In this document: piece by piece, positions 947 to 57,982 of the stretch
Numbering within the stretch: position 1 is the stretch's first letter
How the letters are laid out: the number at the start of each line of letters is the position of its first letter
Source: Orbicella franksi
Taxonomy: Eukaryota
Assembly (NCBI GenBank): GCA_964199315.1
Contig: OZ116698.1
Span: forward strand, 34,596,001-34,660,000
Direction: 5' to 3'
Length of the DNA: 64,000 nt
Position numbers and translations under genes: made by a program
The notes under the pieces: model-generated
The model's input: the letters and a program-made list of their open reading frames with translations, nothing else
Databases searched by the model: none
Told to the model about the DNA's origin: nothing

Positions 947-3900
947 ATGGAAGTCGAAAACAAGGTAAGGATAAATTTTGTTTCAGACAGCGTAGTTTGG
1001 GTGAGCGCTTGTAAGTTAAGTGGTGAATCGCATTGTTGCACAGAAATTCCACTCCTTGACAGTAGACGAAGTAACAACCAGCTGTCAGCAGGCATTTTCG
1101 CGCGGTTTTTGACACTTTCGACTGTTTGGCCAATTTGCTGGTTGTGAAAAGCGCGAAACTTTTGCTTGCTTTTTCTTGGTTTCTTCACCCACTTGCAATT
1201 GAGCTAGTTACGCCTCACCGAGTTGAGTTTCCTGCAAACTCACCGTAATCCACGATTTTCCTTCAATTTGCAACGAAATTTCGATATCAATCGATTGTAA
1301 GCAAGGGTATAAATTTAAAACTCGCTTTCGTCAATTTTTTTGCGGTGGGTCTGTTCTAGAAGTTTGGGAAACTTCGGTTTACGTAGGTAATTATGCAAAC
1401 ATCCAAAACTTTTATGAAGGGGAAAAACAAAAGGAAAATACTACCGTGATTTGCATGAAGTTTTTCATACTTTTTTCACCCAACAGGGTAATTTTCAATC
1501 TTTTCATGCAATCTCGAGATGTTTTTTGGTTGTAAGGGTGTGAGTGGATAGCAAGCAAACGGAATTTCTGAAAAAACTTGTTAACAGTTTTAAACAATGC
1601 CTCTTGCCTTCCATTGTGCCGAAAAACGATTTGCTTCGCTGCATTCGGTAATTTAAAAGCAAATTAGACAATTGTGAATATTTTATGTATGATTGAATGA
1701 ACCACGGACAAGTCTGATATTGCTTACTAATCACCGGGGGCTGAGAAGAAATAAAAATCGACAAGCTTCCGATCCTTGTTAAAAACCTTTTAAACTTACA
1801 AGCGCGCATACGCTGTCGCGTTTTGAAGCCGTTTTTACGAACAATTTCAATTGGGACGAAAAATGCTCCACCAGCGGAAAAGGTATACCGAGAAACAGGT
1901 TTTTAAATCAATCTCTTACACTGCTGAACTAAATACTTCTCTCGATTCTTACAAATGTAAAATGTGTATCTTTTGACAGGCGCGAAAAATGATCAACCCT
2001 GTCGTGGATAGCGTGAGTTTGAATCGGGACGAGATGTTTCAGCCTGTAGCCAAGAAAGCCCGTATGGTTTCATCGCCCAAAGTGATCTCCACAAAGCTTT
2101 CACCGTACTCCTTCACTGTGACTGACTTACAGAAATGTCTTTTCAACGCATCGGCCGTTCATCCAGTTAGCACACAGGACGTATTGGTGAAGAAAAAGGG
2201 ATCGACTTGTTTCTGTAAGTAATCCATGATGTGATGATAAAGTTACTCGAAATGCATCATAGGATATATTTTTTTAATGCTCATTTCGTGCGTGCAGCTT
2301 GATTGCACCTTGTTTTGATGGACTGAGAAAAACCACGCAACCAACTGTTCCGTTTTCTGGGAAAAATGAAAGCACTAAACTGTAATAGCATTTATTTGTC
2401 AAATCGTCTGTTCTGATATTTTGTCTAAAAACTTTCAAGAGTTATTGCGAAATAGAGTTACCAATGCAAGAAGTCACTTGCCCACTTTGCGTGTTTGTAT
2501 GAATTAGCTTGGCTTACAAACTAATCCAGTCTCAAGTCTTTATAATTTGTTGTCCAAAGGGTATTTTTGGAGTCGTTTTGATGATAATTTTTGTGTTCAG
2601 GGTGCGACGCTAGCTCAACAGATCCGAGTTTCCAGTGTCCGTGTCATCAACACGAAACTTCTGCCTCTCCACGAGCAACAAATCTGCCACTTGCTCTGAA
2701 ATCCCTTCCGCCGGAAGTGGACTTGTGTGCATCAAGCGTTCCAGGAACGGGATACGGTATTTGCGCCAAGCGAGCGATTCCTGTCGGCGCGTGGATTGGG
2801 CCTTATGAAGGAACATTTATGAAGCCTGAGGAGCTGTCTTCTGTTACAGATACTTCGTACATGTGGGAGGTATGTTGAGAATGTTAGAGATAAAAGCTTT
2901 GGGCGTTGTTACAATGCTCATTTTTGGGGGCGATAATTTCATTGATAATTTTCTTGCTTGGCATCCCTTAGATCTTTGAAGACGGCAAACTGGCGGGATT
3001 TGTTGACGGCAGTGACGAAAAAGTTTCAAGCTGGATGCGTTTCATCCGCTGTGCTCGCCACAAAGGTGAACAAAACCTGTTTGCCTTCCAGTACCTGGGA
3101 AAAGTGTACTACCGCTCTTTCAAGGCCATCCTGCCTGGACAGGAAATGCTGGTTTGGTACGATGAAAAATACCCACAATACCTTGGCGTCCCAAGCTCAA
3201 TCTTCGATATGGGTCCCTTGACAGCAAAAGGTAAATTTTTTGTTGATATTTGGGTGCGGCAGAATATATTTTTGGGTACATTTTGTTACAGTAGAGTGCA
3301 ATGTACGGGAAATTGATATATTGTTAACGTTTTCTCGATAGGAACTACAAAACAGCCAGAAAAGTTCGGCACTGTCCTTACGGAAGAAGGCCGGGTGCCA
3401 TCTGAGACACAATATCCACCCACCCCTCCCAGCTCAGTGTCTTCTCCCTCCAGTCCTCCGCATTCGCCAAACAGTCAGTCTGGGAGTCAGCAACAGCCAT
3501 CTCCGACCAGAGCAATCAGTGGTGAGCCGTTCAACGGTATTCAGAGCGACGTTCCTTCTGCCTTCGACTTTACGTCTGCTGTGACTGGCCCTGAAAAGCC
3601 ACAGCACCTGATGCTTCAGGAGAAGTTGGTGGTTAATCAGTCTCACCCGCTGCCATCGCCAGAAAGCGAGACCAGCAATCCTGCCTCACCCATCCCTACT
3701 GAAGATGGACAGAACAAAACTGCAAAACCAAGTCAACCCGTATTCAGCAACATCACTGAGCTGAGCCTGTGGAAGTGCGGCCAGTGCAAGAAGTCCTTTC
3801 CACAGAGAACCATGCTCCAAGTTCACGTCTGCAATGAGGCGCCAAAGAAGCCATATCAGTGCGGACACTGCTCGCAGAGCTTCTCACATCCCGCCCAACT

Positions 3901-4114
3901 GCGCGCGCATGCTGTCAGTCATGCCAGTAAGAAGCCATTCAAGTGCGGCTACTGTTCGCGTGCGTTTGCCGGGGCTACCACTCTGAACAATCACATAAGG
4001 ACACACACTGGTGAGAGACCGTTTGTGTGTGACAAATGCGGCAAGAATTTCACTCAAGGATCACAGCTTAGCAGACATCAGAGAATCCCTGGCGACTGTG
4101 TGGCCCGCGTTTAG
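947..4114 (+). CDS. PRDM6: PRDM6-like PR/SET zinc-finger protein, paralog G1 (about 517 aa, 5 coding exons)
   Basis: Exons 947-964 (MEVENK|gtaagg), 1980-2214, 2601-2869, 2972-3230, 3342-4114; all GT-AG, total 1554 nt, in frame. PR/SET motifs [29 protein letters not shown]. The four-finger array WKCGQC..HVC / PYQCGHC / [23 protein letters not shown] / [12 protein letters not shown] matches the vertebrate PRDM6 C-terminus as I recall it. The first microexon is less certain than the rest. Confidence 0.9.
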
Positions 4115-6960: not shown

Positions 6961-7163
6961 TTATGTTTGAACCAGTTGAACCAGTTTACAGTAATGACGC
7001 TCTATTAGGGTTAATTCTGGCTAGCGATTTGGCCTTGAAGGGCGACATGAAGAAAATATAATAACTAGAATGACAAGACGCTTGACTCTTACCGCAATAA
7101 AGGAAAGAAAAGAGAAAACCAGGAAAACTTCCGCCCTGTTTTCAGTTTCTAAAACATTTTGAC

Positions 7164-10383: not shown

Positions 10384-13300
10384 CTACTCAGGCAGGCCTT
10401 CGTATGGAACACAGTCTCCCGGTAGTCCCTCGTGCTTATGTAGCTGTGAGGCCTGGGTAAAATTCTTTCCGCATCTCTCGCATGTAAATGGTTTTTCGCC
10501 AGTGTGCGTGCGCACGTGGTTGTGAAGAGTCGTTGCTCCCGCGAATGATCGATCACAATAGCCGCACTTGAATGGTTTCTCGCCAACGTGAATGACAGCA
10601 TGCGTGCGCAGCTCGTTTGGATTGTCAAAGGACTGATTACAGTGACCACAGTGATAGGGTTTGTGCGGCCTGTTGGGACAGACATGAATCTGAAGAACTG
10701 AGCGCTGGGCGAATGACCTGCCGCACTGTCCACAGTTTGCATCCGAACCATCTGAACTATTACGTTCTTCATCTCCAGATCTTGACTGCCTCTTTTCAGC
10801 TGTTGTCAGCGGAACCATTGTGTTCGTAGCATGCAGTTCCTTAGAAGATGTGACGTCATGATGACCATTCGTCTGCGTGTTACGCGTAATGCCACTTCTT
10901 TGTCCAAAAGATACAGCTTGGTTTTCACGTGTGAAGCGGAGATCTTCCGAAAAAGAAACAGAATTATCAGTCACTGGCGCACTGAATTGTAAAGGTGCTC
11001 CATCGTTCACCCATGAAGCGTGGCGCGCACGTTTGTGACCCTCTGTTGGTAAAGTTGCACGCAAAGTTTCACTTCCTTGATAAACAGTTCGAGTCAAGTT
11101 TCGCATGATATGCGACGCATTGAGTGACCGATCACGTAAGTGATCGCGTGATGATGGCGAGGGCCTGACTTGTGTCGAGCGAGGGCTGGGTAAAGATTGT
11201 AGATTATCTACCAGGGGCCTGGACGAAGGCAGGTGTGAATAAGAGGTCCCTGGGTTAGAAGTGTCGTGGGGTACAACGACTACCATTTCAGGGTGCTGTC
11301 TCGGATCTGTATTAAGAACGAGAAAAATAAGTGAATTAATCACAAAGTGACTGTCACTTATTACCTTCATTAAATTATGCTGGCTTGGTGACTTACGAGG
11401 TCGTGTTTAGCCTTTATCTGCGTTGCGCGTAGTTAGAAGCACCAAGACAAGAGCAAAACGAGTACTGTGACCTGTTAAACCAGTTTTCTACTGCACAAAA
11501 CCGTGGAATATTTGTGCTTGTCTCATGCGGCACTTGCAACAACAACAATACAAACTCTTATTTCACCCCAGAATTAGAAATTACAACGTTTTGCTAAAGT
11601 ACTTTTTCCACGCTTAATTGCGTAGGCCTAATGTGATTACTAGGCATTGAAACTGATTTATTGGCATGGACAATAAATGTCAAGTACAAGAAAATAAAGT
11701 ATAAAAATGGAAAATGCAGCTATCGAGCAATCTTTATCAGTAAAACAAATGACTAGCTCCCTCGGAACCATATCTTACCAACAGGGTTGTGGGGGGACGT
11801 TTCGCATATTTCCAGCGGGATGCCCATATACTGCGGGTACTTATCGTCATACCAAACCAGCAGTTCTGTCGTGGCGGGGATGTCCTGGAAGGCTCGGTAG
11901 TAGATGTGACCGCAATACTGGAATGCAAACATGTTTTGTTCGCCTCTGTGTCGTGCGCAGCGAATGTATCTCATCCAACTTGATTTGTTTTCATCGCGTC
12001 CATCAATGTAGTAAAGTAACTGTCCTTCATGAAATATCTGTAAAACAAGAAAAATTCAACAATTTTTATTGACCAACAGGAGATAGTCGGTTTGACTGAA
12101 ATTTTCGCCAAAATTTCGTTGACCAGCGATACTCAAATAATACACCTGACCAATGGGTCGATATGTGAGATATCTAGTTTGCGTTTCTGATGGTAGGTAA
12201 ACCGTGCGACAATGTGGGAGGTGCGGTTGCCTCATGGTTAGTGCGCTCGTCTCTGGATCGAGCGGTCCGGGTTCGAACCGTGGCCGGGGACATTGTGTTT
12301 TGTTCTCAGGCGAGACACTTTACTCTCACAGTACCTCTATCTCCCCCCAGGTGTATAAATGGGTACCGTTGAATTTAATGCTGGGGTAACCATGTGATGT
12401 ACTAGCATCCCATCAAGGGGGGAGTAGAAATACTCTTGGTCGCTTCATGCTACTGAAACCGGAGAAAAGCGCCGGGCTGATGGGCCACTTGGCTCGTGTA
12501 CAGACTTTGCCCACTTACAATCGACAAAAAATACTATTAATACAAGAAATATATGAGAGATACTTTTGAACTTATAATTTAACAGTATTAGACAGCTTAG
12601 GACTCTGAAAACAAAGGTTCTGAAAAAAGATACTTCTCTGTAATTTACGATCTGAAAAGATTTTTGCTATTGAACCGTGAAAGAATGAAAACAGTCGAAA
12701 TAAAAATAATTTACCTCCCACATGTACGAGGTATCTGTTCCAGACAGCACCTCTTCAGGTCGTACCAGTTCCCCCTCATATGGTCCAATCCACGTGCCCA
12801 GTGGAATAGTCTGATTAGCGCAAACACCGTACCCCACCCCAGGAATACCTGATATACACAGGCCCACTTCATTTGGAAACGACTCCACTGCGCTTGGTAA
12901 TCCCACGGCGCTGTTGTTTATGTTGTTATTGTTGTTTACTGTCCTTGTTAGTTTAAATGTTTGATGAGGACCGTGCAATTGACACTGCTCAGTGCGCTCT
13001 TGGCGGCATCCTTTGCACCCTAGCGGGGGAGAGAGAGGGTAAATTTTTGCACAGTTATTGTTTTAAATGTCCAAAGATCGTCCAAAAACAATGTAATTAA
13101 TGTCAGTTTCCGTTCCTGCTTTAATTATACAGCTTTCACTTGGCTGCCGTTCAAATAACCTGGGATGTTTGTAAAGTTAATTATGATCAGGTATGTTCAG
13201 AAACCATTATTGAAATCAAACGCATGCGCAAAATCGAACCGGAATCAGGATTTTCTGATTCCGGTTGATCCAGAGCGCCGTTGACCGAAAACGCGCGGGC

Positions 13301-16300
13301 CCTGGGGACGAGAGGATCTAGGAGATTTCAGAGGAACAGATGTTTTAGCTTGTCATTAGGAATTTCAGACGTTTAATTTTATATTTGGCAATTTTGATTG
13401 TTTCCAGTCGTCAGTTTAACAAATAGATTCCATGTTGCCGTAAGAAGAATGCTGAAGTCGAGACACTTATTATATGATATATCGAATTGTTCTCGTATTA
13501 TGATTGGTTCTTACTTATGATCTATTGGAGGACAGACGCATAGATCACGTCATATAGATATATAAAACAAATAGATTCCATGTTGCCGTGCGTCTTTTCA
13601 GTGACAGATCACAAAAGACGTCAAAATGTGGTAGAACATCAGTGATACACTCGGTTACCGATCGCCTCGTGTGCTGCTTTTATGTTCCTACCACGTTTGA
13701 CGTCACCTGTGATCTATTACTGAACAGACACATGGCAACATGGAATATTTCGCATCATTTGTTAGTTTTCAGTGCCGGTAAACTTTGGTCTTTTTCTGGT
13801 TAACCCATTCAGACCTTGCTCCATAAAGTACTCTACGATATTTAACGACAGCTGGTTGCCCACCATTCCCGATTATTATATCAGATAGATTGAAACGTTT
13901 TTAACCTCGGTACAACTTGATTTTTCTACTTTGTCATCAATTATCAAACAGTGAATATTGTAACTAAAAAAATTTTATGTGTGTCTGAGCTGTTTTCTAA
14001 GGTACTTTAGTGATAACTTGAAAGCTGTTTTGTATAAATTCCACCACCATATTTGTCATTGTGTGTTTCTTATTTTACTGTCAAGTAAAAGCTTTTACAT
14101 ACATGATAGCAGAGCCAATTGTTTTAATTTGGCTACTAACTTTTTACACATGTAATAGTGTGTGTGGTGTAGCGGTACAGTATTTTTGCGGGGAGAAATA
14201 AACCCTCGAGTTTGGATTCGAGTTTGAGTTCGAATTGGACTTTGAGTTGAAGACCGAGTTAGAATTGGAGTTTACACATGAGAAATTTGACAAGAGATAG
14301 GCGAAAACTGCAAAGACCAAACAAAAGGAATCAAAACAACCTAATTATCTTTTCCGGCTTTGTAGCCCGACCGCAATCAATTGTTTTTTTTTTTTTTCAG
14401 TAGTTCACTTAAGTTAAAAAAAAGTTATAAGAAATCTATTGGAACAATATATTTATTCTTCTTTATTTACCAAAAAATAGTTAGTTACAGTGTGACAGTC
14501 AACCTGCCGTCCACTTAAACTAAAAGCCTAAAAATTAATTCTAACTATTGCAATTATTAATGTTGTTTAAGTCATTGAATCACTTTATCTTGCAGCGTAG
14601 CTAGTCTCGAGTACTGTCATTAAATGCAAAGGATAAAATAAAAATCGAGTCAATATAAACCTGTGTTAATTAAACTGAAAAGGAAAACATTTGCAAACAT
14701 AAATCAATTTATACTTGTCCAAATTCAATTCAATATATAATATATTTTGTTTCCCGCGAACAGCGTCTACCCAGCCAAATTTAGAGACAAATGTATGAAA
14801 ATTAGGAAAATTAGCTGAGCGTCTTCTAGAAAAGCTACATCCTTCAAACTTGGTGAATACAATCTTTTCTACCTGGAATTCTAACATTGCGATTTACAAA
14901 TTGTGTTAAATTAGAGTCTGGAAAAAGTTATTTGCCATCGGATTTCCAAACAAACACTGTAATTTCTGACAGCTTTGCCTACCCCTCAAGATAGCGCAAG
15001 GTCGGTACTGCATGTGCCACTCGGACGGGCGCATAAGCAAATAGAGTGGAACCCCGTTAATACGACCACCTTCGGGCCATGGAAAATTGGTCACATTAAC
15101 GGGATGGTCGTATTAAAGGAGTTCTTTAAATAAGAAAATGACTGACTGAGCTTTTTTGGGGGCCAGAATAAAGTGGCTGTAATAACGAGGTGTTCGTACT
15201 AACGCGGTGGTCGTAAGGCTTGGTTCCACTGTAAAGCTACGTGCAGAAAAATACAATCCCAAAACGGCATTACAGTGGAACCCCGCCTTACGACCACACC
15301 ATTAATACGAACACCTCGTTATTACGGCCACTTTATTCTGGTCCCCCCCCCCCCCAAAAAAAAAAGCTCAGTCAGTCATTTTCTTATTTAAAGAACTCCT
15401 TTAATACGACCACCCCGTTAATGCGATCAATTTTCCATGACCCGAAGGTGGTCGTATTAACGGGGTTCCACTGTACATCCTTCAGTCTCTTCCGAAATAC
15501 CGTTTTGATCCACGATGAAAAGATAAGACCTACAATGTATCACCACGTGCATCTTTTCTGATCTTTCTCTAGCGATGAAGTGATTTCTATGATTGTTTAA
15601 TCACTGAAAACAGAGGCATGTTTCAGCGTTAATAAATCTTTCAACTGCAAGTCTTCATAAATTAAATTAAACCTACCTTTCCATTGCTAATGCCACGATG
15701 GCCAGCAAGCAGACTAATGACAGGATCTCAGATCATACCACTGTTATCCAAATGTGTCATTTTAAAACACAAGATGACCACGTGGACAACGTTAGTGTCA
15801 CGCGTCACGCGTCACGCCACATGCACTTTCTTAAAAGAGATGGACATGAGATCGTTGGCTCATGGTTAGCATCTAAAATTTGCGGAAAACTAATCCTTCG
15901 TTTGTGTTTGTGCCATCCCCGATGATGGAGATGCTCGTCAAGGGCTTCCCCGCGCCTTTTCCCCGAAAAGCGGTCCTTCCAGAAATGCAAGTATATCGGC
16001 GGGTTGTGTTGTTTTGCGAGCACCTCACCTGCCTCCTCTTTTTTATTTTGTTCTTTTTTATTTGCATGTTTTATTAGTTCTCTCAAACTTTAACTCGAAC
16101 TCCAACCCGAAAATTAACTCGAAGTCCAACTCGAACTCGAACTGGAACTCGAACTGGAACTCGAACACGAACTCGAACTCGAATCCAAACTCGATGGTTC
16201 GGGATTTCCACTTTTGCGAGTCTTGGGTTAAAACAGAAACGATGAGTTAAAATGATTTGCTATGTACTTCACACTAAAATGTCTTTGTGTTTTATGCTGC

Positions 16301-19179
16301 GTGCAGCACAAAACACAAAGATCTAAGAGGGTTATAAATAACCTGTATCCAACAAGGGCGAATGGACTAATTGTTTTATTGAATTTTTTCAATCGACTGG
16401 ACGATGTGGACATTTCAGTTTGTTTTAAACGAAGTGATGGTATGAAAAGGCGGCAAAATTTGTGGCGCGGTGGTCGGTGCGGTGTTCACTTTTTGAGTTG
16501 AGTGAAACATGCCAGTGGAAAGCGAGCGAGATAGAGTTTTCTTTCCAAATATTCTGCGCATAATGACCTCCCAAGTCGTCTATATTCTGGAAAAGTGTAA
16601 CAAACTAGAAAGGTTCACGGAAAGACCTGAAGTAATAGTATTGCTGCCAGTGAAAATTATACGGCTTGTGCAAATGAAGTCAAATGAAGTATTTGTTTAC
16701 GCGGCTCATAATGACCGCAGATTGTGTTGTTCAGAAGGAATCGGTGAAGTTCATTGGTGTGTTCAAGAACAAAACCCAAATGTAAGGTAACAAACTTCAC
16801 TGAAGAGCTAAGCTTATTTTATACCGAATTTTTTTTACATTTCTTTTCGTCTTCATTCAGTTCAGTCGCTTTTGTGTTTAGATACCCCGCAGCCGGGAAG
16901 TGTTTTCAAAGAAACTAGATACCCGGCAGCCTGTAATTCTTATATAATTTCCACGGAATATCTCATTCAATTCTTAATTAGAATAGTACCTCTTTGTTTA
17001 GAAATGTTAAGCGTTTTCAAGTATTATTTTGGCTTTTTATTCGAGGGGATTTTCGAACTTGGGCACCGTGCTATAAAATCTCGATGTTCCGACACTAACT
17101 TAGAAAATATTTGTACTCTGACTCCAGAGTCAAATCTCATATAATAAGTTTAATATCTACAGAAATTACAGTTGAAATTCTCTGAGTGTATTCGATATTT
17201 GTTTAGAAATGCCAGGCGATTCTAAATGGTTGTAGTTTGGTTTTGTAGTGAACGAATTCTCCCAGCCTCGACATACTACACTGTTTAAAAAAGAAAACTA
17301 GATACCCGGCAGTCAAAATTTCATAGATAATCAATGAATCAACGGAACTAAACGACACTCGCCGCACTCATGTTCCATATAAATAAAGCCATCGTGATGG
17401 CCGAGACTCAGTGAAGCCAATACATTATCGGAACATGGTTGGTGATTAATTAGACTAAATACCGTGCGATATTGTATTCGTTTCTTACAAAAAAAAATTG
17501 ATATGCATCGTAAGCAAAATTTGTGCCTGTGAAGCAAACATTTTCCATGGCCAATGGGGAAAAATACTTTTCTAGTTTCCGAGACGGAAAAAGGAGGCGA
17601 AAAATTTGTTTCAGGAATAATTTTTTTCACGTGGCTAAACTAGGTTTAAACGTTTGTCTCCAAAATTGTTTCTAGTTTGCTCAGACCTGAATTTGCACTC
17701 TGTTGCGAGTGCAGTTAGATTATGGACTGTTTTGCTATACTAGACCTTAATTCGCACTCTCTAATGTGCAGCTGGAAAATAAACCGGTTTACTATACTAG
17801 AATTATTATTATAAAGACTGATCAATACCCTAGAGTTCTTGCTTAGTAACAAATCTTAGGGCTGGTAAACCTTAGTGTTTTGGTCAACCTTAAAAACTAG
17901 CGCCCTAGTGAAATAAGAGAGCGACATTATTATCTTCTTGCTCAGAGCTGGAAGTTCATAGAAATGGGGACCAAATTAAAATTACGAGAGACTAGCCATA
18001 GCTTTGGAGAATAACCTCTGAAATCCTCGAATTAAGACTGAGAGTGTTTTAATGATTCATACAATGATGTTTGAAGGCATTTGTGGCAAAGGTTTTGAAC
18101 TGCTCATTTGTTCCTTTAGATTCTGAACTTCTGGTCTAAGCCTCCTAATATTTCGAATGAAAACATGTACAGTGTGAAATTTTCTAAGGAGATTTCCATC
18201 AGGAGGAAGATCTGATTAAATTCGCTCTTATGGTTTCTCTTTGACTCTCTTTCAGGTCCCATTCACACACCACTGAAGTCAATGGGCAATCGAGTCTGAT
18301 CCAGGTTAGAACAAACGTAGATGTTAGGTCCTTTTGATGAAAGTTGGACTCAAAACGTGATTATCTATCGACGATATTTAAGTTCCTTGTAGTTACAACT
18401 TGGATTTCTTACGTAATGAAATTATATTGCTTTGATTTACAAAAGAATCTTTATTTCCTTATGACGTAGTGAAAATGATGCCGTCAACCAAAGCTTGTTG
18501 TTAGCGATAAACGACACCAACTAAAAGACTATTTTTGGCACAATTTTAGGCTGTGTGGTTTTATGGTCTATCCGTCTTAAACCCTAATAATGGTTTTCTT
18601 CACTTGCTTATAAAATAGGAGTTGGTTTAGTCAGCTTTTATCAAAGAAGAACTGATGTTCAAGCAACCAGGAGTGTATCAAAATGTATCACTGAATAACA
18701 ATTTAAATTGTATTTGGTGTTTGCTCACTTAATGAATAGCTTATTGTCTTACTCTCTCAGTAAACTAATGAATATTTCACATAAGTAATGATCTAATATG
18801 AAAGTAGATAAAAACTTTATGGCCTAGTTTGCGAGTCAAAACGCCATTCTGGCGCTTCCCTATGCGAACTCGTGAACAGGATTACGTTGTTAGTTCGTTA
18901 ATTCTTACGCACTTTTCACATGAACTGTGACTTACAGTAGCTGTGGACTTCTTCTTTGTGTTGAAGGGAAGTTCTAAAATCTTCCTTGCTCACAACGATT
19001 ACTTCATCGCGCTTGTACAGACATCGGTGAAGATCATCTGTTGTGTACAGCATTGGTCGATTTGCTTGTGGTTGAAGCGTTCTAGCCCGTGAACTGACAA
19101 ATGTGTGTTCCCCAGTTGTCTTTGCTCTTGAAATTCCTGCGTTACTCATCTGAAATTTAGAGAGCAGTGTTTGAAACAT
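10384..19179 (-). CDS. PRDM6: PRDM6-like paralog G2 (about 576 aa, 4 coding exons)
   Basis: Exons 19179-18936, 13019-12715, 12037-11779, 11306-10384; total 1731 nt, in frame, with phase 1/0/1 introns like the other paralogs. Knuckle [16 protein letters not shown]; PR motifs [29 protein letters not shown]; four fingers; exon 1 carries [11 protein letters not shown]. Confidence 0.88.
12216..12508 (+). mobile_element. tRNA-derived SINE in G2 intron
   Basis: tRNA-like head with A box (TGGTTAGTGCG) and B box (GGTTCGAACC), followed by a body (GACACTTTACTCTCACAGT..CAGGTGTATAAATGGGTACC..CATCCCATC..GTCGCTTCATGCTAC) that I recognise as a common anthozoan SINE2. Confidence 0.8.
13425..13750. repeat. 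Interspersed repeat with internal duplication and long imperfect hairpin
   Basis: AATAGATTCCATGTTGCCGT occurs twice (about 13422 and 13570). Arms CATGTTGCC..GACGTCAAAATGTGGTAG / CTACCACGTTTGACGTC..GGCAACATG. Confidence 0.55.
15044..15231. mobile_element. Tc1/mariner-type MITE, copy 1
   Basis: TIRs (G/C)AGTGGAACC..GGTTCCACTG with TA on both sides. Confidence 0.75.
15273..15473. mobile_element. Tc1/mariner-type MITE, copy 2 (inverted relative to copy 1)
   Basis: TA|CAGTGGAACCCCG...CGGGGTTCCACTG|TA; the internal sequence is the reverse complement of 15044-15231. Confidence 0.8.
15534..15603 (-). other. Candidate alternative exon of G2 (short N-terminus MHVVIH, or poison cassette)
   Basis: Acceptor TGTTTTCAG|15603, donor 15534|GTAGGT. 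ATG at 15552 is preceded by an in-frame TGA, and its phase-1 end splices in frame to the knuckle exon (MHVVIH-W-CKGC). A 73-nt GT-AG intron (15676-15604) lies upstream. No transcript evidence. Confidence 0.4.
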
Positions 19180-25000: not shown

Positions 25001-25215
25001 CTGCAATACTCTGCACAATACCCGAATTTATCCTACCTGGAACATAAGCTAAGCTTTGATTGCAGAAAATTCATCTCTTGTTTCAGCAACGTAGATTCGC
25101 CCTAATTCGCCGGGAAATGTATTTGTCTATAATACTTGTAGCCCTGCATTTATCCTGACAGTTTATTTAACACTGCTAGCGGCTGGTATATCCTTACCTC
25201 GTATTCAAGTTCCAT
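22017..25215 (-). CDS. PRDM6: PRDM6-like paralog G3 (about 470 aa) with only two intact zinc fingers
   Basis: Exons 25215-25198 (MELEYE|gtaagg), 24579-24357, 23986-23730, 23279-23021, 22672-22017; total 1413 nt, in frame. PR domain nearly identical to G1. Only PFQCGHC..HSAIH and FKCGYC..HIRSH fingers are intact. Confidence 0.85.
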
Positions 25216-34100: not shown

Positions 34101-37100
34101 AACTATGAAACTATGAGAGGATTCATAGCCACTTTATATTTTTGAGAATTTACGTAGGTTCTGGACCTCTCTACTGATTTTTTTTATCTTTGCAAAACGT
34201 ATTTAACCATGCTTGTTACAATTCGATATTATGACATAGCACGCGCGCTGGTCCTACCTAATTCCTGTTGCGCCATCATGGTAACGTGACATGTACAGTT
34301 TCATTTTAGCTGCAAAGTTTCTGACAAGTTTAGCTGCGACTTCCTTTTGTTAATTAAAGTTTCGGCAATGTGAACATCATTCTTAACAATTCAAACCGTA
34401 CTTCGGGCCTTTGACTTTTACCAATTACCAAGCTAAGATGCGTACTGAAACTTGAGTATTTTGACTTTGCTTGCCTATATTTTTATTAATTCGAAAAAGC
34501 GAATTTCTCATTGGCAATTTTAGAAACCAGATGAAGTGTTCTCGCTCTACTGATTGTGGCGTGTTTTTAACCAGCCAATGGGATACGTCCTTCTGCGTGC
34601 ATTGTGAGAACCTTGTGGTCAACCACAAATTAAACCTGTATTAAGGACGGTGCATACTTTTGTTAGTGCGCACACGTTCTGCGCATCACGCAATGCATGG
34701 TTTACACTCCAAGCGCGCGCTAGGCTTGGGATGGACGTAATCAACTACGCTACCAGGTGCGCGACTAAAATGAAAGCAAAATTTTTCTACTGTGACCAAA
34801 TCAAGTTCAATGAACCCGTACTAAAACCAGGAATACCAGAATAGCAGCGTATCGCTAACCACCAACTGTTAACGGCTTCCAGCTGAAAAACTAGCTGTTA
34901 TCTGTCGAAAATTATTCTGAAATCCAAATGTAAACTTGTACCTGCCGATGGCGTAGTGCGCGCGCAAAACAAGTGCTAGAGACGCAAATGTTTTACTTAC
35001 TAGGGAGGTAACAGGAAAAATGTAACGGGCAACGTAAAAGTTTTCAAAAAAGATGAATAACTTTAAAAAACGCATGGTTACCCCTGCATTTTAAGTTATG
35101 ACATGGAAGTGGCAAGCCCGTTCAACACGTGATTAGTGTCTGGTTGTGAGGAAAAGTTATTGAGACTGTATTTGAGCAGAACCAGAGGAAGGCTGTCAGA
35201 GACGTTAAAAGCGCTGTTGCAACGATTTTGCCATTAAAAACATGCCAAAAATGCTTTTTATGTAACCTTTTATCATGCAGTTTTAAGATCTTATAATGTG
35301 CCGGTCTGCTTTTCTGTGTGTAAAAGCGAATTCTAAGGAAATCTGTGAAGAAATATCCTTTACTTCTCTTTTCAGAAAAGTGCTGTTGTCAGCATTTTTG
35401 TGAAGATTCAAGGCTAATTATTTCTTTGTGGATTCCAATAGCCCTTGCAAAGATCTACTTTTTGCACTTGGTCCTAATTTGGCGCCAAAACCTTTGTATT
35501 TAGTGGGCACCGTCCTTAACGCCCAAGTTGTTGTCGCTATGTTGTAAAAGAATTGGTTCATGCTTTTAGCTGTGCGTATATCGAGTTATGGATGCACTTG
35601 GGAAGTTTATAGAACACTCAAGAAGCTCTCCAAACTTCCCGCTTGCATCCATAACTCGACATACACATTTAAAAAAAGAATTGGGGTCACCGAGCTCATT
35701 TTTGAATTATAAGTACTTTAAGTTAGAATAAAGGGTTTTTCTAACTGGCTGTACTGTTGCTTTGTTGCTATAAAAGGATGACCACAACCTGTTTAACAAT
35801 GATTGAGCATTAAACTTGATTGATACCATTACTGCAGGATCGTATGACAAAGAGTGATGGTATTGATCCATCAAAGTATGTGATGAAAAAGCTGAAACTA
35901 TTATCAGCCTCCTTTTAAAAGTAATTTGCGTAAGAATAGAATCAAACCCACCTACACGTGCCAGTTTTTAGGGAGATAGACTGAGGTCTGGACTTTTACT
36001 AGACGTTTGACTTACAGTAATCTGACAAAATCTGACAGCAATTTGGCTACTAAAGACCATAGTGACCAGTAAAGACTTTCAGAGGTGCAGTTAGAGTTCG
36101 ATTGTGCAAAAATTGACTATACAATAAGCTTTTTATTTCGCTCGCTGTGATGTTCCTTTCGCCTTGAAAAATGGTTTTTAACGAATCATATTTACAAAGT
36201 TGAAACATCCCGTCCAGGCCAGGCACTCTTGCGATACATTTATTTATTAAAAATAATGAAGTTTGTTATGATATTTTATTGGACGCAATGTAAATCTCCA
36301 CAATGTTTATAGTCAAAATAACAAAAGCTAAAACTGAACTAGAATTTTCATAAGTAAAAAAGTAGAACGACATTTGTTTTTTAATGGTGGGAAAGTGGTT
36401 CGTTTTAGCCAGTTGAGAACGACTCCTCTATCACACCCACTGAACCCTGAAATTCATTTCCGATTAAAATGTTTCTAAATTTTGTATGAAATGTATATTG
36501 AACGGTAAAATATTTTAGTGTAACCTTTTCATTTGAGTTGAGTCAGTGTTCACTGAAACACATCGTTTTAACAAGCTGTTCCACGGAACTAGACTTGTGC
36601 AAAGGTCAGGTGAATGACGCGAATGCCTCGTCTGGAAGCATCTTGAAAATGATGAACATTAATTTAAGTGAGTGTTGACAAGATATTGGTGTGGTTTGGA
36701 TTGATTTGTGTATAGTATGAGCTCTTTATTTGATGACAATCAAATTGGCTCTTGATCAATGCGTGTTAAGTACAGTGGCTTAGTCGGTAAGTTATTAGTA
36801 GCTAATATAGCTTTCCTTGTAGTTGCAGTCCAACGTCCCTGACTAGCCATCTCTCGTAATCGATAGCACGTGAAAAATTCCCAAATTTCTCTTACGCATC
36901 CAAATACACTCCCACAATCAATCACACTCACTGAACAAAACCATGATCACCTACGATTTGTATGCAAATTTTACCATTTCCGCTGTTTAATACTTTCCGG
37001 CTACCCCAAACTGTCCTGTGCGATTTGACACGAAAGAACAACTGGCTTAAGCTTAAAGTTATTTAATGTCAGTGCTAGACCAAATCTAATAACAATTTAC

Positions 37101-37542
37101 GTAGTGCAAGAAGCTTCTCGATGTGTGGCTAGTTAACCCTGTTTTCATCGTGGGCTGCATTTTCTTACGATAGTGCTTTTATCAATGAATTTTAAACGGC
37201 AGTAATATATTATTGCGAATAAGCATCGACTCTTTTCGTGAAATAGAAAGTAACACTATTAATGAACGCGCAAGTTCTTACAACACGCGAGTATCCGCGT
37301 AGTTGCGCGTGACTGGACTTGGTTTTTGATCAGCACGACACGAACCAGTTTTAAGCCTTAATTCTAAACTTACCTGAATTAACTCTGTCCGCTGTTCTGA
37401 GTTGCGCTGTAGTGAAAGTACCACCTTCGTCCATACTGACCTGCCGTGCTGTGTTTGTGCCATAAAGTACCGTGAACACGTCAGAGGGACTGAAATATCT
37501 TGTGTTTGCATGTGAAGGCCCGGGCTCTAAGCTGGATGGCAT
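28186..37542 (-). CDS. PRDM6: PRDM6-like paralog G4 (about 427 aa, 4 coding exons)
   Basis: Exons 37542-37374, 33963-33698, 31024-30760, 28769-28186; total 1284 nt, in frame. Knuckle [15 protein letters not shown]; PR motifs [29 protein letters not shown]; four fingers; exon 1 carries [12 protein letters not shown]. An extra upstream coding exon cannot be excluded. Confidence 0.87.
29640..30690. repeat. Degenerate (TGAC)n tetranucleotide satellite, about 1 kb, in the last intron of G4
   Basis: Mixed TGAC/TGAT/CGGA/TGGC units; source of the spurious SQSVSQ ORFs. Confidence 0.9.
31180..32622. mobile_element. Non-autonomous TIR element with subterminal 12-mer arrays
   Basis: Ends CGGCGTCGACAAAACC / GGTTTTGTCAACGCCG; (GGATCACGGATC)n at 31208-31300 and its reverse complement at 32512-32605; AT on both flanks. 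Confidence 0.7.
33012..33170 (+). mobile_element. 3' end of an L2/Crack-type LINE
   Basis: [50 protein letters not shown] followed by (TAA)n and an AT-rich UTR. Confidence 0.65.
33355..33413. repeat. (TATG)n microsatellite
   Basis: About 14-15 perfect units; may be the tail of the adjacent LINE. Confidence 0.95.
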
Positions 37543-40500
37543 AGCAAGCTGATTTAACTAAAGAAACAAGTTCTGGTATTAGCACAAACTAATTCCATGC
37601 TTGCACAAATCAAATTTCGTTTTTAACTCTACAACTGCAACAGTTATTTCATGTGAATTAGAGTGCAATGACCTAGAGTGTAGTTACACAGGACATACTT
37701 TATTACAAATAATAACATAGAGTCAGCTAATACATTTGTGTCTTGCTGTATGTTGGCATGTCATAGGGGCGAAACAATTATCCGTGCATCTCAGAATCGT
37801 GAAGCAGAATTTGGTGATTTGTGAATTACACTTGATGTAGCCATATGTTCTCCCTTTTTGAATCAATTCATTCTTTGCCCCCTCTGAAATCATGATGAAG
37901 CAGCCATGGTCTATTCAATGCGGAAAATTATGTATTCTCCCTGATTTCTATTCTTCATCAAAGTGCTTACCAAATTTAACTCCAACCTTCGTTTAGCCTC
38001 TTCGCTAAACAAAGACATTTCCACAGCATCCGTTGTGTTTGCCTGATGTTCCTGCGAAGCTTAGTATCCTTCTTCTACTTCTTAATGTGCCGATGGACTG
38101 AACAAACAAATTTGAATACGGTTGAAGGTTCCAAAACTGTATTCTTTTCAGACTGACCTGTCATTTATCCACGCTTGGGTTGGAAATAAGCAGTTTGCAA
38201 TAACATGATTGGTTCATTTTACCCTGTGCTCGTGTGGCCCTTTTTATTGTCATTATAAAGGTAGTTGAATATGAAATTTGAAATCTTAAGCTTCCAAAGT
38301 TGATGAATTATAGAAGGATCCCACTGCATATCTGCGATAGTAATTTTTGCAATATTTGTAGTGTTATGTGCCTTTCGTTTGCATATTTGTGAAGTCTTTT
38401 CTTTGCCGTATGGCCTTTAAACCCAACCATTTTGCATACGTAACATTGATTGGCGTATTGTTCAAGAATTTCTAAAGCCATTCAAGCATGTAAAGTGTTT
38501 TTTACCAAATAAAACGGATGATCATCATTAACTTTCTTTCTATCAAGAATGAAACTAAAATTCAATTTAAGTGAAAGGAAGATGTTTCTGGGACGGATGT
38601 TTTTATGCTGAAAGAGTATTTAGTGATTAGCGGAGGAGGAGAGGAAAAGGTCACCTTTTGTCGAAGTGACACTGAAAAATTTACATAACAAGCGAGCAAC
38701 GTAATAGCATGCCACAAATACATAACTCTTTAAGCAGGCTCGAATTAGAAATTAATGACTTCTAAGGCATCCAGATAAGATTGAAAATACTTTGACATGT
38801 GACATGTGGCTGACTGTAGTAAGCTTATAAACTTCACACAAAATTACAAGTACATAACAAGTTTCCCTTGTTCGCCTTTAATCAGTAAGCTATGGCGCTT
38901 TGAACACAAGGTGTTTGTAAATGATGCTACAGAGGCTGGTTGATAAGGGCTCTTTTTAAATTTCTTGTTAACTGAGTTATAGGGTGTCTGACATGGAAAG
39001 CTTGGTTATGTAAGAAATAGGATTTGTACGGCGAGCGATCTTAAAATGAGTCGATCAATTGTGTTTAGAAACAATGGCTGCATACCAAACTCTTTCTTTG
39101 TAAAAACGAACTTTCTAGAATCCTGACAGACCATCTTCTTCAGCAGAGTTATGAACGAAATAAGATTAGAATAATAAGAAGAATAACGAAAAAGTTACCT
39201 TTTGAAATAATAAAGAAAAACTTTACTATGTAACGGTCAAATGTGTAGCCCAGTTTAGGGAATTTACAATTTGGTCAACGTGGTTACGTCGCACATCAGT
39301 GAAATTGATCACATGTCTAGATTTAATTAGAACATTAAGACATAGGAGAGTGTTAAGATTGAAGAGGTGTATTATGAAAAGTGGAACATTTGAAGTTACA
39401 GAATAATAATGAGCAGTTTCGTTGTTTATGACCAATAATTTACTTTTTCTTACAAAAACCCTGATGAGTGTGGGTGATGGCAAAATGTTTACGAGACGTT
39501 TTTTTATTTTTATTTTTTTAATTGTTTTGTATGTTTACGAAATTTAATTGGATAAAAGCTTAAGGCACAGTGTTCGGACTGATAATCAAAAGTTTTCTTT
39601 CCTAATTTCCCTATCATGGTGACAAAAAACACTAAATATACAAATAAGTTGGATGAAAAGATTAAAAGATAAAGAGCAAAACAGAACAACTATTTTGGGT
39701 TGAAGTTCAGGATTACAAGGATGGAACCCGGGCAACTGTACAACTGATGACGGAATAACACAGATTCAAAGAGGTAACGAGAGAATAGTTCCACAATGAA
39801 AGAAAAACATAACATCGAACGGCTGAAAATTAGTTGAAACAGCCTAGTGCAACCTTTAAAATCCTTTCAAAACATCATGAACAACGGAACCAAACGCTGG
39901 ACAACTGTGAGTAAATTTTGTATTTTGCCATCTGAAAGGATTTGTTGTTAACCGTTATTGCAGTTGATGCTAGGTTTTGTCTTTTCTGTCCGATTGCATC
40001 GTTTTCACCTTTGCAACAGCCGTAATTTCTTGATCAATTGTAATTAGTATTGAAAAAGATCTTGCAGAGAGCTTACGAGATTTGTAAATTTTTGTATTCT
40101 TTGTTATTATTTTGTTACGTTTATTTTGTTATGTTTTTCTTATTTAATATCATTGTAGTTGATGCCAGGTTTTGTCTTTTCTGTCAGAGTTCCCTGTTTT
40201 CATCTTTTCAACAGGCGTAATATCCTTAATAAATTGAAATTAGCACTCGAAAAGATCTTGCAGACGCAGTGACAAATTGTGTGAGGTTCTAAATACTAGA
40301 AGCTTCTATCCTTAATAACTCGTCCTGATTCAGTTTCTAGCTTTCTGATTAACATTTTCCAAAGTCCTATCAGTATCCATTAAATATCAGATAATTTATT
40401 TTGTGCAGAAACAGTCACGTGATGAAATGATATCGCCAGATAAATCTTGTGGTATTTTGAGACAAGAATAGAATATCATGTGCTTTCGTGCCTCCATGGA

Positions 40501-42900: not shown

Positions 42901-43115
42901 CCGTCCAGGGGTACGACGAGGTGGAGGTACGAGTTGCTGCGATGAGTGGATCGGCAACGTTTGTTGAAATGCCCTCAGCTTGAAAACCTTGGTAGAGATG
43001 TGAAACACGGCCAAGTGAAGGCGAGGATACATTGGATGAACTCGGTTCAGGTCGGTCGGGTCCGTTAAGAGGGTTGGATTGTTCAGTAGCAAAACTAGCT
43101 GAGATATTAGAAGTC

Positions 43116-48001: not shown

Positions 48002-48140
48002 TGAAACATACTAGCAAAAGTATGGCTCGGTGACATAACAACACAAGTTGACGAGGCTTGCTCAACACAACAACTTTATTCTCTAAGCATCTTGGTTAAT
48101 ACAACAGCTTAACACAACTTCCGGTTACGAATATATTACA
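48002..48140 (-). repeat. Gypsy 3' LTR
   Basis: 137/139 identical to 52364-52502. Confidence 0.96.
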
Positions 48141-48199
48141 CTGCTTTCCCCCAGATTTTCAGGATGCTCTTATACCCAAGACATAGTGATAACCTACAG

Positions 48200-52223: not shown

Positions 52224-52342
52224 TTTGATAGCACGTGCTCAAACTTTGATCAAGTTGCCTCGGTCGAAAACAAACCTTTTTCCTCACACAGAGAAAATCA
52301 AAACTTCACGGGATTTCTCATGCGTCTTCGTGCATGTAGAGT

Positions 52343-52360
52343 ATCCCATCCTCGTCGCCA
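52343..52360 (-). promoter_or_regulatory. Gypsy primer-binding site, tRNA-Ser(GCU)
   Basis: TGGCGACGAGGATGGGAT, 3 nt inside the 5' LTR; complementary to the recalled 3' end ATCCCATCCTCGTCG-CCA of metazoan tRNA-Ser(GCU). Confidence 0.85.
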
Positions 52361-52363
52361 AAA

Positions 52364-52502
52364 TGAAACATACTGGCAAAAGTATGGCTCGGTGACATAA
52401 CAACACAAGTTGACGAGGCTTGCTTAACACAACAACTTTATTCTCTAAGCATCTTGGTTAATACAACAGCTTAACACAACTTCCGGTTACGAATATATTA
52501 CA
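52364..52502 (-). repeat. Gypsy 5' LTR
   Basis: TGTAATATAT...TATGTTTCA; pairs with 48002-48140. Confidence 0.96.
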
Positions 52503-54901: not shown

Positions 54902-55238
54902 GTTTAACTAGCTAAGGTTAGAAATAAGTAAAAAAACAACAATTTTAAAGACTCGATAATGAAACAGGTAAATATTACTTGTAAATCACTTAACTGGTTA
55001 AGACCAACAGTTATTTTCTGTCGTTGTTGTTTAAAATCCGGTGTGACTAAAACGCCACAATGAAAGGTAGGAAAACACGTTGAAATACAAATTACTTAGA
55101 GTTACGCTCAAAGTGTTTCTAATTATAAAATACACAAGAGTCCTTTTTATAACGTGATATATAAATGTTTACAACTCCACGCAATCTTATAGTTGCTAAT
55201 GTAAAATTGTTCTTGGGGTCCTCACGACAGAAAAATTC

Positions 55239-57982
55239 TCAAGAGAAGCATTCATAGAGGGATCTCTTGTGCTTGCTGAGTTGCGATGCTTGTGAAAAAG
55301 TTTTGTAGCACTTGTTACAGGTGAAAGGCCTCTCTCCTGTGTGGGTTCGGACATGGTTGTTAAGAGTCGTGGCTCCGGCGAAGGTTCGCGAGCAAAATCC
55401 GCACTTGAATGGCTTTTTGCCAGAATGAATGACAGCATGCGTGCGCAGCTCGTTAGGATGCGCGAACTCCTGTGCGCAGTGACCGCACTGGTAAGGTCTG
55501 TTTGGATTTCTGGAACAGACGTGCATTTGAAGCAGACTGCGCTGAGCGAAAGATTTGTCACATTGACCACAATGCCATATCTTTGGTTCGCCATTCTCCA
55601 AGATGAATTCTCCGTCAGCTACACGCGGCCATTCACAAGGCAGATCTGTCTTGTCCTTGAGACGTGCCTCTTCTAACTTCCGTAGCATCTCTTTTGGACC
55701 GTCAGTCTTCTGCGTGCTCTGCAGCTTCACCTTCTTAGCATTGTTGCTGCGGTCGTTTTCTTCGTGCTTTCGTTTGATGCTTTCCTTTGGTATCTGTTTG
55801 TTTGCTTGAAGTTCTCTTTCTTGCGCGGTTCTTACTTGTGGCGAATCACGCGGTGATGTTCTCTGGTTAGGTCCAGTCACCTGCGGAGACGCTTGTCTCA
55901 TAGCAGCAGAGGTCGGAGGAGGAACGGGGGAAATTTGTTGTTCATCTGCGTACGGCGTCGCCATCACTGGGTAAGGCCTGGAACCTGAGGCGAAAAAATA
56001 AGTACTGTTCAGTTCTGTTGATGTTAAGTTAAGAGTGAAAGTTGCAAAACAAAGTCGTCAAAATGTAATGAGAAATCTTCAGTTTAAAAAGTTTAAACAT
56101 TGCAGAACTATCATGTTGCGAGACTTAATTGGGTACCAGATTCCCAAACAGACAACGTCTTTCGCGCCGTCTTTGGCCCACTTGTAAATCTTTGAGATCT
56201 TTAAAATTTCCGAAATCGTCCCTACGCAGCAGTTTTCATTTACTTGAACATAAATAAACACCGGGTAATAAAATACATAACAACGGAAGAAAACGTTGAC
56301 TCACCCATTGAATTCAAGTCGTGTATGCTTAACGGAATCCCAAAGTACTGCGGGTAGAGATCTTCATACCACACCAGTAACTCTGTCCCTATGGGAATTT
56401 CTCTGAAGGCTCGGTAGTAGACATTGCCACAGTATTGGAAAGCAAACAGGTTTTGCTCGTTTCTGTGACGAGCACATTTTATGAATCGCATCCAGCTTGA
56501 GGTGGCCTCGTCTGTCGCATCAAGATAGTACAAGAGGCGGCCATCTTTGTAAATCTGAGATTAAAGAGAATGAAGTTAATGATTAATTCTCTATTGTAAA
56601 AGCGAAATCAGTAATTGTGTAGGTAAAAACGGATACATTGTTGTAATCAGTTTGTGGTCTTTACAACTAGCTAAACGGTAAAACGAAATATCACTCAAAA
56701 CAGGATTTATAAATCAGCTCAATATCTATCGCACGAAGATATTGTCGGAGAAGAGTAGGCACTAATTTGGAGTATCAAGGAAATAAACTCGATAGATAAT
56801 GACTTCACAAAACCATTAATCTAGTTTGTCAGATATAAACAAGCTACACTAATAGACAGGTTCGGAAGATGGAGTTTAGTCAAGTCACTCTGGAAACACT
56901 TCACTCAATAGGTCAGTAACATTCAGTTAAACACAAGTAATTTTTGTTTTGTTCTCATACCTCCCACAAGTACGAGGAGTCCATGTTTGGGTTGATTTCA
57001 TCTGGATTAATTCGCTTTCCCTCGTAAGGACCTATCCACGTACCCACAGGAATGTGTTGCTTGGCAGCCACGCCATACTTCTTGCCTGGGATGCTGGATT
57101 TACACAACTGCACCACATCAGGGAATGACTTCATGGCATAGCTGTCCCAGTCCCCTGGGTAGCTAAGGTCAGGTGTGTTGTGGGATGAGTGAATAGGACA
57201 GCGTATGTTGTATACCTTGTTACATGTTCTGCAAACTGAAGGTAAAACATGGAATGAGTTCTATTTTCCATCTGTATGCCATGATATATCTATGTTTATC
57301 TCGGAAAGTTTGGATGGAGTTTCAACAAGTGGCCCGCCTGAAATTTCAGTTAACTAAAAGATTGTTCTCAGTCGTCCCCGATACCCTTTTTAACAACTGA
57401 CTAGCGACCAGATTTTTAGCTGAATGTTGACTGGTTGTTATGCAACTGAAGCAGGCTCTACTATCCAACCTAGGTTATCGTACCAAACCATGACATCTCC
57501 AAAATTATGGACGTTTGACGAGTACATGAAACGTTTTTGCGAGCTGATCTTACCAATTTAAGATGCTCCGTTATACTTAAGTGTTAATCTCGGAAATCTC
57601 GGGTTGTACTAAGTGCTTTTCTTAGCTAAAACAGACAACTTTCCGCTTTGAAATTTACTTTAAATAGTTTCTCTGTCCGCATATCACACTACTCTCAAGT
57701 AAACAAGCAAACAAAAAAAGAGAGAACTTTAGAACAGATACAGATTAACTTACACGAAGACTGTTTCTCCGTCCCCGCACCATTGTCTTCCAGTTTCCTA
57801 TTCCTGGATTCTTCAATATTAATCGTCTCAACTTTTCCACTCTTCTGATGCAGGTAATCATATAAATCTTGCTCGGTAAACTTAAAAAAACTGGGCTTCA
57901 CTGCTTCCTTCTGCTGTTTTGTCTTTACCGGGTTGAACTGTGGTCTCAAATACGCCGCCTTTTCAACAGTTGACGCCTGCAT
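55239..57982 (-). CDS. PRDM6: PRDM6-like paralog G5 (about 499 aa, 4 coding exons)
   Basis: Exons 57982-57754, 57235-56961, 56554-56305, 55984-55239; total 1500 nt, in frame. Knuckle [15 protein letters not shown]; PR motifs [29 protein letters not shown]; four fingers; [13 protein letters not shown] motif. The start is uncertain because ATGCAG may itself be an acceptor. Confidence 0.88.

Follow-up and report, generated by a model that had tools for sequence, protein, structure and literature searches.

The window analysed here, 64,000 nucleotides (nt) of the genome of the stony coral Orbicella franksi (GenBank assembly GCA_964199315.1, contig OZ116698.1, positions 34,596,001 to 34,660,000 of the forward strand), encodes five intact genes that combine a PR (SET-like) domain with C2H2 zinc fingers, at 947-57982. 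They are half of an array of ten PRDM6-type genes that lies within 128.5 kb of the same contig. Quite probably, this array is an ancient tandem expansion of the PRDM6 subfamily that has been kept as distinct, conserved genes whose products act as nuclear regulators.

A ten-gene array

A six-frame search of the O. franksi genome (497 Mb, 805 contigs) placed the window at C1:34596001-34660000. The Pfam PR model matches 26 PR-C exons genome-wide, 10 of which fall within 128.5 kb on contig C1 (34.593-34.721 Mb). About 0.007 would be expected by chance in a stretch of this length, and the clustering is far above chance. The window itself contains no N. An original prediction made from the letters of the window had described a cluster of five genes; the five are there, but the array has ten, with one more upstream and four more downstream.

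G0: plus strand, 0.8-3.4 kb upstream of the window, ending 0.8 kb before its start
G1: 947..4114, plus strand, 517 amino acids (aa); exons 947-964, 1980-2214, 2601-2869, 2972-3230, 3342-4114; intron phases 0,1,0,1
G2: 10384..19149, minus strand, 566 aa; exons 19149-18936, 13019-12715, 12037-11779, 11306-10384; intron phases 1,0,1
G3: 22017..25362, minus strand, 470 aa; coding exons 25215-25198, 24579-24357, 23986-23730, 23279-23021, 22672-22017
G4: 28186..38018, minus strand, 502 aa; exons 38018-37971, 37557-37374, 33963-33698, 31024-30760, 29597-29436, 28769-28186; intron phases 0,1,0,1,1
G5: 55239..57982, minus strand, 499 aa; exons 57982-57754, 57235-56961, 56554-56305, 55984-55239; intron phases 1,0,1
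G6: minus strand, downstream of the window
G7: plus strand, downstream of the window
G8: minus strand, downstream of the window, C1:34699610-34701650 (loci L008-L009)
G9: plus strand, downstream of the window

Inside the window G1 converges on G2-G5, which face it from the opposite strand, as predicted. Genome-wide, at least 12 of about 26 PR-domain loci are of the PRDM6 type, ten in the array and two elsewhere (on contigs C11 and C14). This set is the largest PRDM expansion in the coral genome.

Gene models and transcription

Spliced models were assembled manually and with a script that refined splice sites by reference to orthologous proteins. All of G1-G5 have complete open reading frames (ORFs) with no internal stops. 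Pfam PF21549 (PRDM2_PR) matches both PR exons of each gene, with E values of 1e-19 to 1e-28 for the PR-C exons, and zf-C2H2 and zf-H2C2_2 match the last exon, to which the fingers of each gene are confined. Introns lie in phase 1 before the exon that encodes a zinc knuckle, in phase 0 directly after MWE and in phase 1 after the PR domain, and G1, G3 and G4 have a small extra 5' coding exon. The models agree with the predicted extents, the phases and the single finger exon. The 1/0/1 phases around the PR domain are common to all ten array genes, so the pattern is shared as had been claimed, but it is not a trait of the cluster: the phase-0 intron after WE also occurs in PRDM9-, PRDM12- and other PRDM-type genes of the same genome. 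It is a family-wide ancestral feature and therefore no evidence for the common descent of the cluster.

G1 starts with a real six-codon exon at 947 (MEVENK), which had been anticipated, and continues with an N-terminal motif, a variant knuckle, the PR domain and four fingers. Its Oculina counterpart KAL9985992.1, 85% identical over aligned residues, begins MEVESK. The first exon of G2 was located by similarity and confirmed by the start of Pocillopora XP_027044764.1 (MSNAGISR); this gene encodes a canonical knuckle (CxxC-x7-CxxH), a PR domain, a long linker and four fingers. G4 carries an extra linker exon (29597-29436) in addition to a canonical knuckle, a PR domain with a divergent GxG region (SAGEGHGVY) and GPF, and four fingers, and its model is 99.8% identical to XP_020615206.1 of Orbicella faveolata. 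G5 combines a canonical knuckle, a PR domain and four fingers and shares 88% identity with an Oculina protein and 80% with a Pocillopora protein, both named PRDM6 by RefSeq. Beyond the window, the G7 exons are 97-99% identical to O. faveolata XP_020625758.1.

G3 was the most doubtful gene, and four RNA runs were compared with the stretch that covers it (21500-27400). Logan contigs of the polyA run X3 match all four predicted introns exactly, at joints 22672/23021, 23279/23730, 23986/24357 and 24579/25198, each GT..AG on the minus strand, and reveal an upstream exon with a start codon. This exon 0 (25215-25198) encodes MELEYE and is the counterpart of the MEVENK exon of G1; the 5' untranslated region extends to at least 25362. 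The RNA check that had been proposed for the gene models thus has a positive answer for G3. From the raw-read polyA runs X23 and X24 about 12% was read in each case; no read matched 21500-27400, which speaks neither for nor against expression. Run X1 also covers the introns, so that DNA or unspliced RNA may be present, and it was set aside as evidence of splicing. G3 had been a candidate pseudogene, with no ATG in exon 1 and with fingers 1 and 4 gone; the spliced upstream ATG exon in polyA RNA and the orthologues of the gene reject this. For many orthologues of array genes, a Logan contig of about 2 kb encodes the entire protein of 480-580 aa, so these contigs are spliced transcripts of those orthologues.

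Membership of the PRDM6 subfamily

A profile of the ten PR-C exons retrieved 3151 proteins at E <=0.001 from a library of 1.84 billion proteins, and PR domains were also extracted from 16 other PR loci of the same genome for phylogenetic trees. A quick tree used the PR domain only (131 rows). A careful tree used the PR domain and fingers (77 rows, 307 columns; IQ-TREE, LG+C20 with posterior mean site frequencies, PMSF). In the latter, the ten array genes and two other coral genes form a clade with deuterostome PRDM6 (macaque, bird, fishes and the hemichordate Glandiceps) with support 99/95, and the PR-only tree agrees on this grouping (support 99). PRDM12-type L019 and PRDM9-type L015, L016 and L020 fall outside; the PRDM9-type clade also takes in PRDM9-like proteins of Nematostella, lamprey, amphioxus and oyster. 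With the knuckle and PR domain of a Nematostella member as query, cnidarian proteins come first and are followed, among the 120 matches listed, solely by vertebrate PRDM6 (43-46% identity, E about 1e-38). The array genes belong to the PRDM6 subfamily, as the original prediction had proposed, and stand apart from other PRDM subfamilies.

Their architecture agrees with this placement. The domain order is that of vertebrate and hemichordate PRDM6 (PRISM): the N-terminal motif FxFxxxDLxxxLY, a knuckle, the PR domain and a block of four fingers of which the first is C2HC, all shared with macaque and Glandiceps. The finger block is about 60-70% identical, and within the coral genome a block at >=55% identity is found only in the array and in one C14 gene. 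A knuckle with exactly four fingers, the first C2HC, is the rule, with exceptions in G3 (two fingers) and in G6-G8 (no knuckle in exon 2). The coral set differs from the deuterostome one in number, with one gene in deuterostomes and at least 12 PRDM6-type genes here, ten of them in one array, and in several modules that are described below.

The nearest other subfamily in the PR+finger tree is PRDM12, represented by L019 of the same genome. A weak PRDM6+PRDM12 grouping is also reported by Vervoort et al. 2016 (PMC4760075). PRDM12 differs: its three fingers are of another type, the matched region lacks a knuckle, and the 99/95 clade excludes it.

Three lineages make up the PRDM6 clade: deuterostome PRDM6, a cnidarian group around the C11 gene, and a large cnidarian-only clade (94/79) that holds the group of the C14 gene, octocoral and hydrozoan groups, and a hexacoral clade. 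The hexacoral-only clade (45 rows, 93/83) contains all of G0-G9. The two coral genes outside the array are the following.

L017: C11:1358001-1368000, minus strand, PRDM6-type
L021: C14:8521001-8531000, plus strand, PRDM6-type

L017 is the most vertebrate-like of the coral's PRDM6-type genes in its knuckle, which is near-identical to that of macaque and hemichordate PRDM6, but its fingers number only three and are divergent. An orthologue with 79% identity occurs in the sea anemone Actinostola. In the array genes the situation is reversed, with vertebrate-like fingers and knuckles that diverge more than that of L017. L021 has orthologues in Acropora, Porites, Actinia and Nematostella. Unlike in the array genes, its finger block is interrupted by an intron after finger 1, and its matched exon encodes no knuckle.

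The PRDM9-type loci L015, L016 and L020 are at C15:18744001-18754000, C15:19558001-19568000 and C12:6798001-6808000. Besides a knuckle and a PR domain, they encode long arrays of fingers that are nearly identical (YQCPQCNKAFN...), and two of the three lie 0.8 Mb apart on one chromosome.

Age and probable gene conversion

In the trees, G1, G2, G4, G5, G6, G7, G8 and G9 each group with proteins of other stony corals, and most array members have one-to-one orthologues there. The groups usually span robust (Pocillopora, Stylophora, Oculina, Desmophyllum) and complex (Montipora, Porites, Acropora) corals, with support of 100/100 for the orthologue group of G2; the partners of G1 come from robust corals only. 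Full-length aa identity is 36-54% among the window paralogues and 62-88% to orthologues in other genera. Paralogues this divergent, with orthologues in other species, speak for real physical linkage and not for an assembly artefact, in line with the original prediction.

Proteins of sea anemones (Nematostella, Actinia or Actinostola) join the G1/G3 group (99/98), the G2 group (95/79) and the G9 group, whose support of 82/57 falls below the star threshold of the tree. At least three of the duplications may therefore be older than the divergence of sea anemones from stony corals, an event no younger than 540 million years as cited in preprint 10.64898/2026.09.07.749791.

Synonymous differences (Nei-Gojobori) are saturated among the nine finger-bearing genes (proportion of synonymous differences, pS, about 0.64-0.96) in all pairs and regions with one exception. 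The two PR exons of G1 and G3 have pS of 0.37 and 0.44 and 81-87% nucleotide identity. The N-terminal, linker and finger regions of the same two genes are saturated, and their introns have no similarity. The N-terminus and linker of G3 (EVIVVSP, FPSPPPSP) match the finger-less protein P0025 and the G3-type half of a Montipora model, not G1. The simplest reading is a probable old gene conversion of the PR exons between these genes, which are about 20 kb apart in opposite orientation. Such conversion would also explain why G3 stands beside G1 in PR-based trees.

G0 is sister to the G4 group in the PR+finger tree (96/76). The order G0-G1 / G2 / G3-G4 looks like the product of an old inverted duplication of two genes.

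Module differences among the paralogues

The PR motif ELLVWY or EMLVWY is kept in all ten genes; the surrounding modules vary. The knuckle is canonical (CxxC-x6/7-CxxH) in G0, G2, G4, G5 and G9. In G1 and G3 it is a variant, CF|WC...C.CH.H, whose first Cys pair is split by the phase-1 intron (CFWC...CPCHQH in G1), and G6-G8 have no knuckle in exon 2. Within the PR domain, G0 and G4 have GPF in place of GPY, a substitution that macaque PRDM6 shares, and the GxG region is divergent in G4 and G8.

The fingers differ as well. G3 retains only fingers 2 and 3 intact and has lost 1 and 4, and P0025, an orthologue of the G3 type, has no fingers. G8 and its Stylophora orthologue XP_022782011.1 have a PR domain without zinc fingers and share the C-terminal motif RRxIVI...DAPDPF. 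The predicted contact residues of finger 3 are GTTN in all finger-bearing members as well as in Nematostella, Glandiceps and macaque. At finger 2 almost every paralogue has its own set, and at finger 4 G0, G4 and G7 deviate; the contact residues of fingers 2 and 4 were read from alignments, and the regular expression used for fingers missed several first and fourth ones.

The original prediction held that each member had altered a different module. Differences of this kind are present, as in the variant knuckle of G1/G3, the GxG region and GPF of G4 and the lost fingers of G3, but they are not recent tinkering. Orthologues carry the same states, which are therefore ancient and maintained and have become fixed across corals. 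Maintained differences of this sort would fit a long-term division of labour among the paralogues.

Proposed function and alternative explanations

Vertebrate PRDM6 is a smooth-muscle repressor with reported H4K20 methylation. By analogy, the coral proteins may be nuclear, sequence-specific regulators whose fingers bind DNA and whose PR domain and knuckle bring in or modify chromatin factors. The array would have arisen through successive local duplications among hexacorallians, before the radiation of stony corals and partly before their split from sea anemones, and has presumably been retained since as distinct and separately conserved genes. Most members encode the full set of N-terminal motif, knuckle, PR domain and four fingers. 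The paralogues are predicted to bind related but non-identical sites, because the contacts of finger 3 are invariant while those of finger 2, and in some genes of finger 4, differ. Two lineages appear to have given up DNA binding in part (G3, by the loss of fingers 1 and 4) or in full (G8, which has none), and their products may act as PR-only cofactors or competitors. Given their long retention, sub- or neo-functionalisation of the copies is a reasonable inference.

The relation of the array to bilaterian PRDM6 can be drawn in two ways. The PR+finger tree gives a three-way split among deuterostome PRDM6, the C11 gene group and the large cnidarian clade, with no preferred order. It is possible, if somewhat doubtful, that the array genes descend from a sister paralogue that was present in the cnidarian-bilaterian ancestor and was lost in bilaterians, with L017 as the true PRDM6 orthologue. 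The almost identical knuckle of L017 and hemichordate and macaque PRDM6 points this way, and the PR-only tree joins L017 with deuterostome PRDM6 (Shimodaira-Hasegawa-like approximate likelihood ratio test, SH-aLRT, 82), a grouping that the approximately unbiased (AU) test does not reject (p 0.62). A single clade of all cnidarian PRDM6-type genes is not rejected either and fits slightly better (AU p 0.65), and vertebrate PRDM6 resembles the array in its finger block far more than it resembles L017 with its three divergent fingers. Given the C11 knuckle, the array genes may not be the direct orthologue of PRDM6.

Two other explanations concern the nature of the genes. A young expansion by fast birth and death, like the arrays of KRAB-zinc-finger or PRDM9 genes, would leave decaying copies, with G3 as a pseudogene. 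The missing fingers 1 and 4 of G3, the lack of an ATG in its exon 1 and the retroelements within the array could be taken as signs of this, and cnidarian PRDM9 shows such dynamics (preprint 10.64898/2026.09.07.749791). Against it, the five window genes have complete ORFs, G3 is spliced in polyA RNA from an exon 0 of six codons that supplies the ATG, and G3-type orthologues in other corals share the linker motifs EVIVVSP and FPSPPPSP. The synonymous sites of the paralogues are saturated, and the orthologue groups span both major coral clades. This explanation is largely refuted, and we consider it very unlikely. We give hardly any credence to the idea that the genes are truncated PRDM9 paralogues that retain SET and fingers and lack KRAB and SSXRD, as some RefSeq names imply. 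The fused Montipora model is named 'PRDM9-like', PRDM9-like proteins score well against the PR-C profile, and old SET+finger PRDM9 paralogues have been reported in hexacorals (preprint 10.64898/2026.09.07.749791). Both trees reject this identity: PRDM9-type sequences form a separate clade in each, and the array groups with PRDM6 at 99/95. The PRDM9-type genes of the coral carry long uniform finger arrays and not a fixed block of four.

Several points weigh against an ancient, conserved PRDM6 expansion that acts in the nucleus. DNA binding, repression, enzymatic activity and division of labour are predictions for the coral paralogues. RNA evidence in the array is limited to G3. The cnidarian-only clade (94/79) and the hexacoral clade (93/83) are moderately supported. 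The orthologues of G0 in the sets retrieved are fragments (83-87% identity), none of them full-length, and G0 sits on a long branch. The conserved order of genes across species rests on a few adjacent pairs and three local neighbourhoods.

A bolder version of the tandem expansion is improbable on present evidence, and would be of wider interest. The array could be an ordered, hexacoral-specific regulatory unit more than 500 million years old, deployed by cell type or stage under shared control, in which G3 and G8 antagonise the DNA-binding members and gene conversion keeps the PR domains of the inverted neighbours G1 and G3 alike. If so, it would be a conserved transcription-factor cluster comparable in kind to the homeobox clusters, and its founding gene would be one that deuterostomes keep as a single copy and protostomes have lost.

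Linkage in other species and existing annotation

Neighbouring members are found together in other hexacorals. The Montipora model XP_068692324.1 is a fusion of a G3-type and a G2-type gene in the same order as in the window. In Nematostella, where the original prediction had mentioned several Prdm6 paralogues and several are indeed found, four PRDM6-type proteins each map to a 19,000,648 bp contig, and XP_032239603.1 has another PR+finger gene upstream on its own strand, the end of which is 7.5 kb away. Desmophyllum has a G6-type gene followed by another PR+finger gene 8.4 kb downstream. Several members in Stylophora, Oculina, Pocillopora and Porites map to contigs of equal size within each species.

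In Porites evermanni a Cu-monooxygenase gene, on the opposite strand, comes next after the G9-type gene, and homologous exons lie directly after G9 in Orbicella. Cu2-monooxygenase (PHM/PAM-like) exons occur twice just beyond G9, at C1:34722681-34724781 and 34749792-34754307 (L011 and L013-L014), which suggests that this flanking gene is duplicated in the Orbicella genome.

RefSeq already names XP_020615206.1 and XP_020625758.1 'putative histone-lysine N-methyltransferase PRDM6' and uses the name PRDM6 for orthologues in Pocillopora, Porites, Oculina, Stylophora, Montipora, Desmophyllum, Acropora, Actinia, Exaiptasia and Nematostella. Among relatives, some other RefSeq models are fusions (Montipora XP_068692324.1 and Stylophora XP_022798068.1), and some bear the names PRDM9-, PRDM4- or PRDM15-like. 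The array is of use for annotation here, where neighbouring members have been merged or given the names of other PRDM genes.

Relation to known PRDM systems

According to Vervoort et al. 2016 (PMC4760075), PRDM6 goes back to the metazoan ancestor, was lost in protostomes and occurs in cnidarians; the paper also mentions species-level duplications in ten PRDM subfamilies. Its main text contains no description of a cnidarian PRDM6 array, its gene order or its age, and literature searches aimed at the array found no published description of it.

The families of PRDM9 paralogues in cnidarians (preprint 10.64898/2026.09.07.749791) are the closest parallel in kind. They too are PR-domain zinc-finger genes in several copies per genome, some of which share a scaffold, and certain truncated paralogues are older than the divergence of sea anemones from stony corals. 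They form a separate clade, and the PRDM9-type genes found here have long, fast-evolving finger arrays and recent duplicates, in contrast to the fixed four-finger block and the old, individually conserved members of the PRDM6-type array.

Vertebrates have one PRDM6 gene, and protostomes are reported to have lost it (PMC4760075); in the coral it appears to have founded the largest PRDM expansion, whose copies have been held as a linked array since before stony corals diversified. PRDM6-type genes have their RefSeq names, and the tandem expansion of transcription factors is an ordinary kind of thing; the attraction of this array lies in its age, its series of modules, its finger-less lineages and the probable gene conversion. 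As a natural series of paralogues with swapped or lost knuckles, PR motifs and fingers, it could be used to probe the role of each module of PRDM6. It could further serve to examine whether cell types specific to cnidarians depend on lineage-specific duplicates of chromatin regulators. A 'PRDM6-like' gene of Nematostella is among the early factors of cnidocyte specification in a single-cell preprint (10.1101/2022.05.11.491463), and PRDM6 is listed among the responsive regulators in a paper on coral heat stress.

Mobile elements and repeats

The space between G4 and G5 holds two further features.

48002-52502: minus strand, compact long terminal repeat (LTR) retrotransposon of the Ty3/gypsy type
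42577-47664: minus strand, a second run of long ORFs, with repeats at 44336-45387

The Ty3/gypsy element is bounded by direct repeats of 139 nt (48002-48140 and 52364-52502) that are 99% identical. It has open gag-like, protease-reverse transcriptase, RNase H-region and integrase frames with matches to RVT_1, rve and Integrase_H2C2, and its reverse transcriptase frame has KQDD in place of the usual YxDD. The second run looks like a degraded mobile element. Two of its ORFs were scanned (42577-43350 and 46158-46826) and have no Pfam match at E <=0.01. In this region a 139-nt unit is repeated in tandem about seven times, and a shorter repeat of 48-52 nt lies at 45451-45761.

A CTGA microsatellite of 835 nt (29854-30688) lies in an intron of G4. 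It accounts for a long SQSV-rich ORF (30052-30615), which was rejected as a gene. The previous intron of G4 contains two 12-nt minisatellites 1.2 kb apart (31211-31302 and 32502-32601), whose units, CGGATCACGGAT and TCCGTGATCCGA, are reverse complements of each other.

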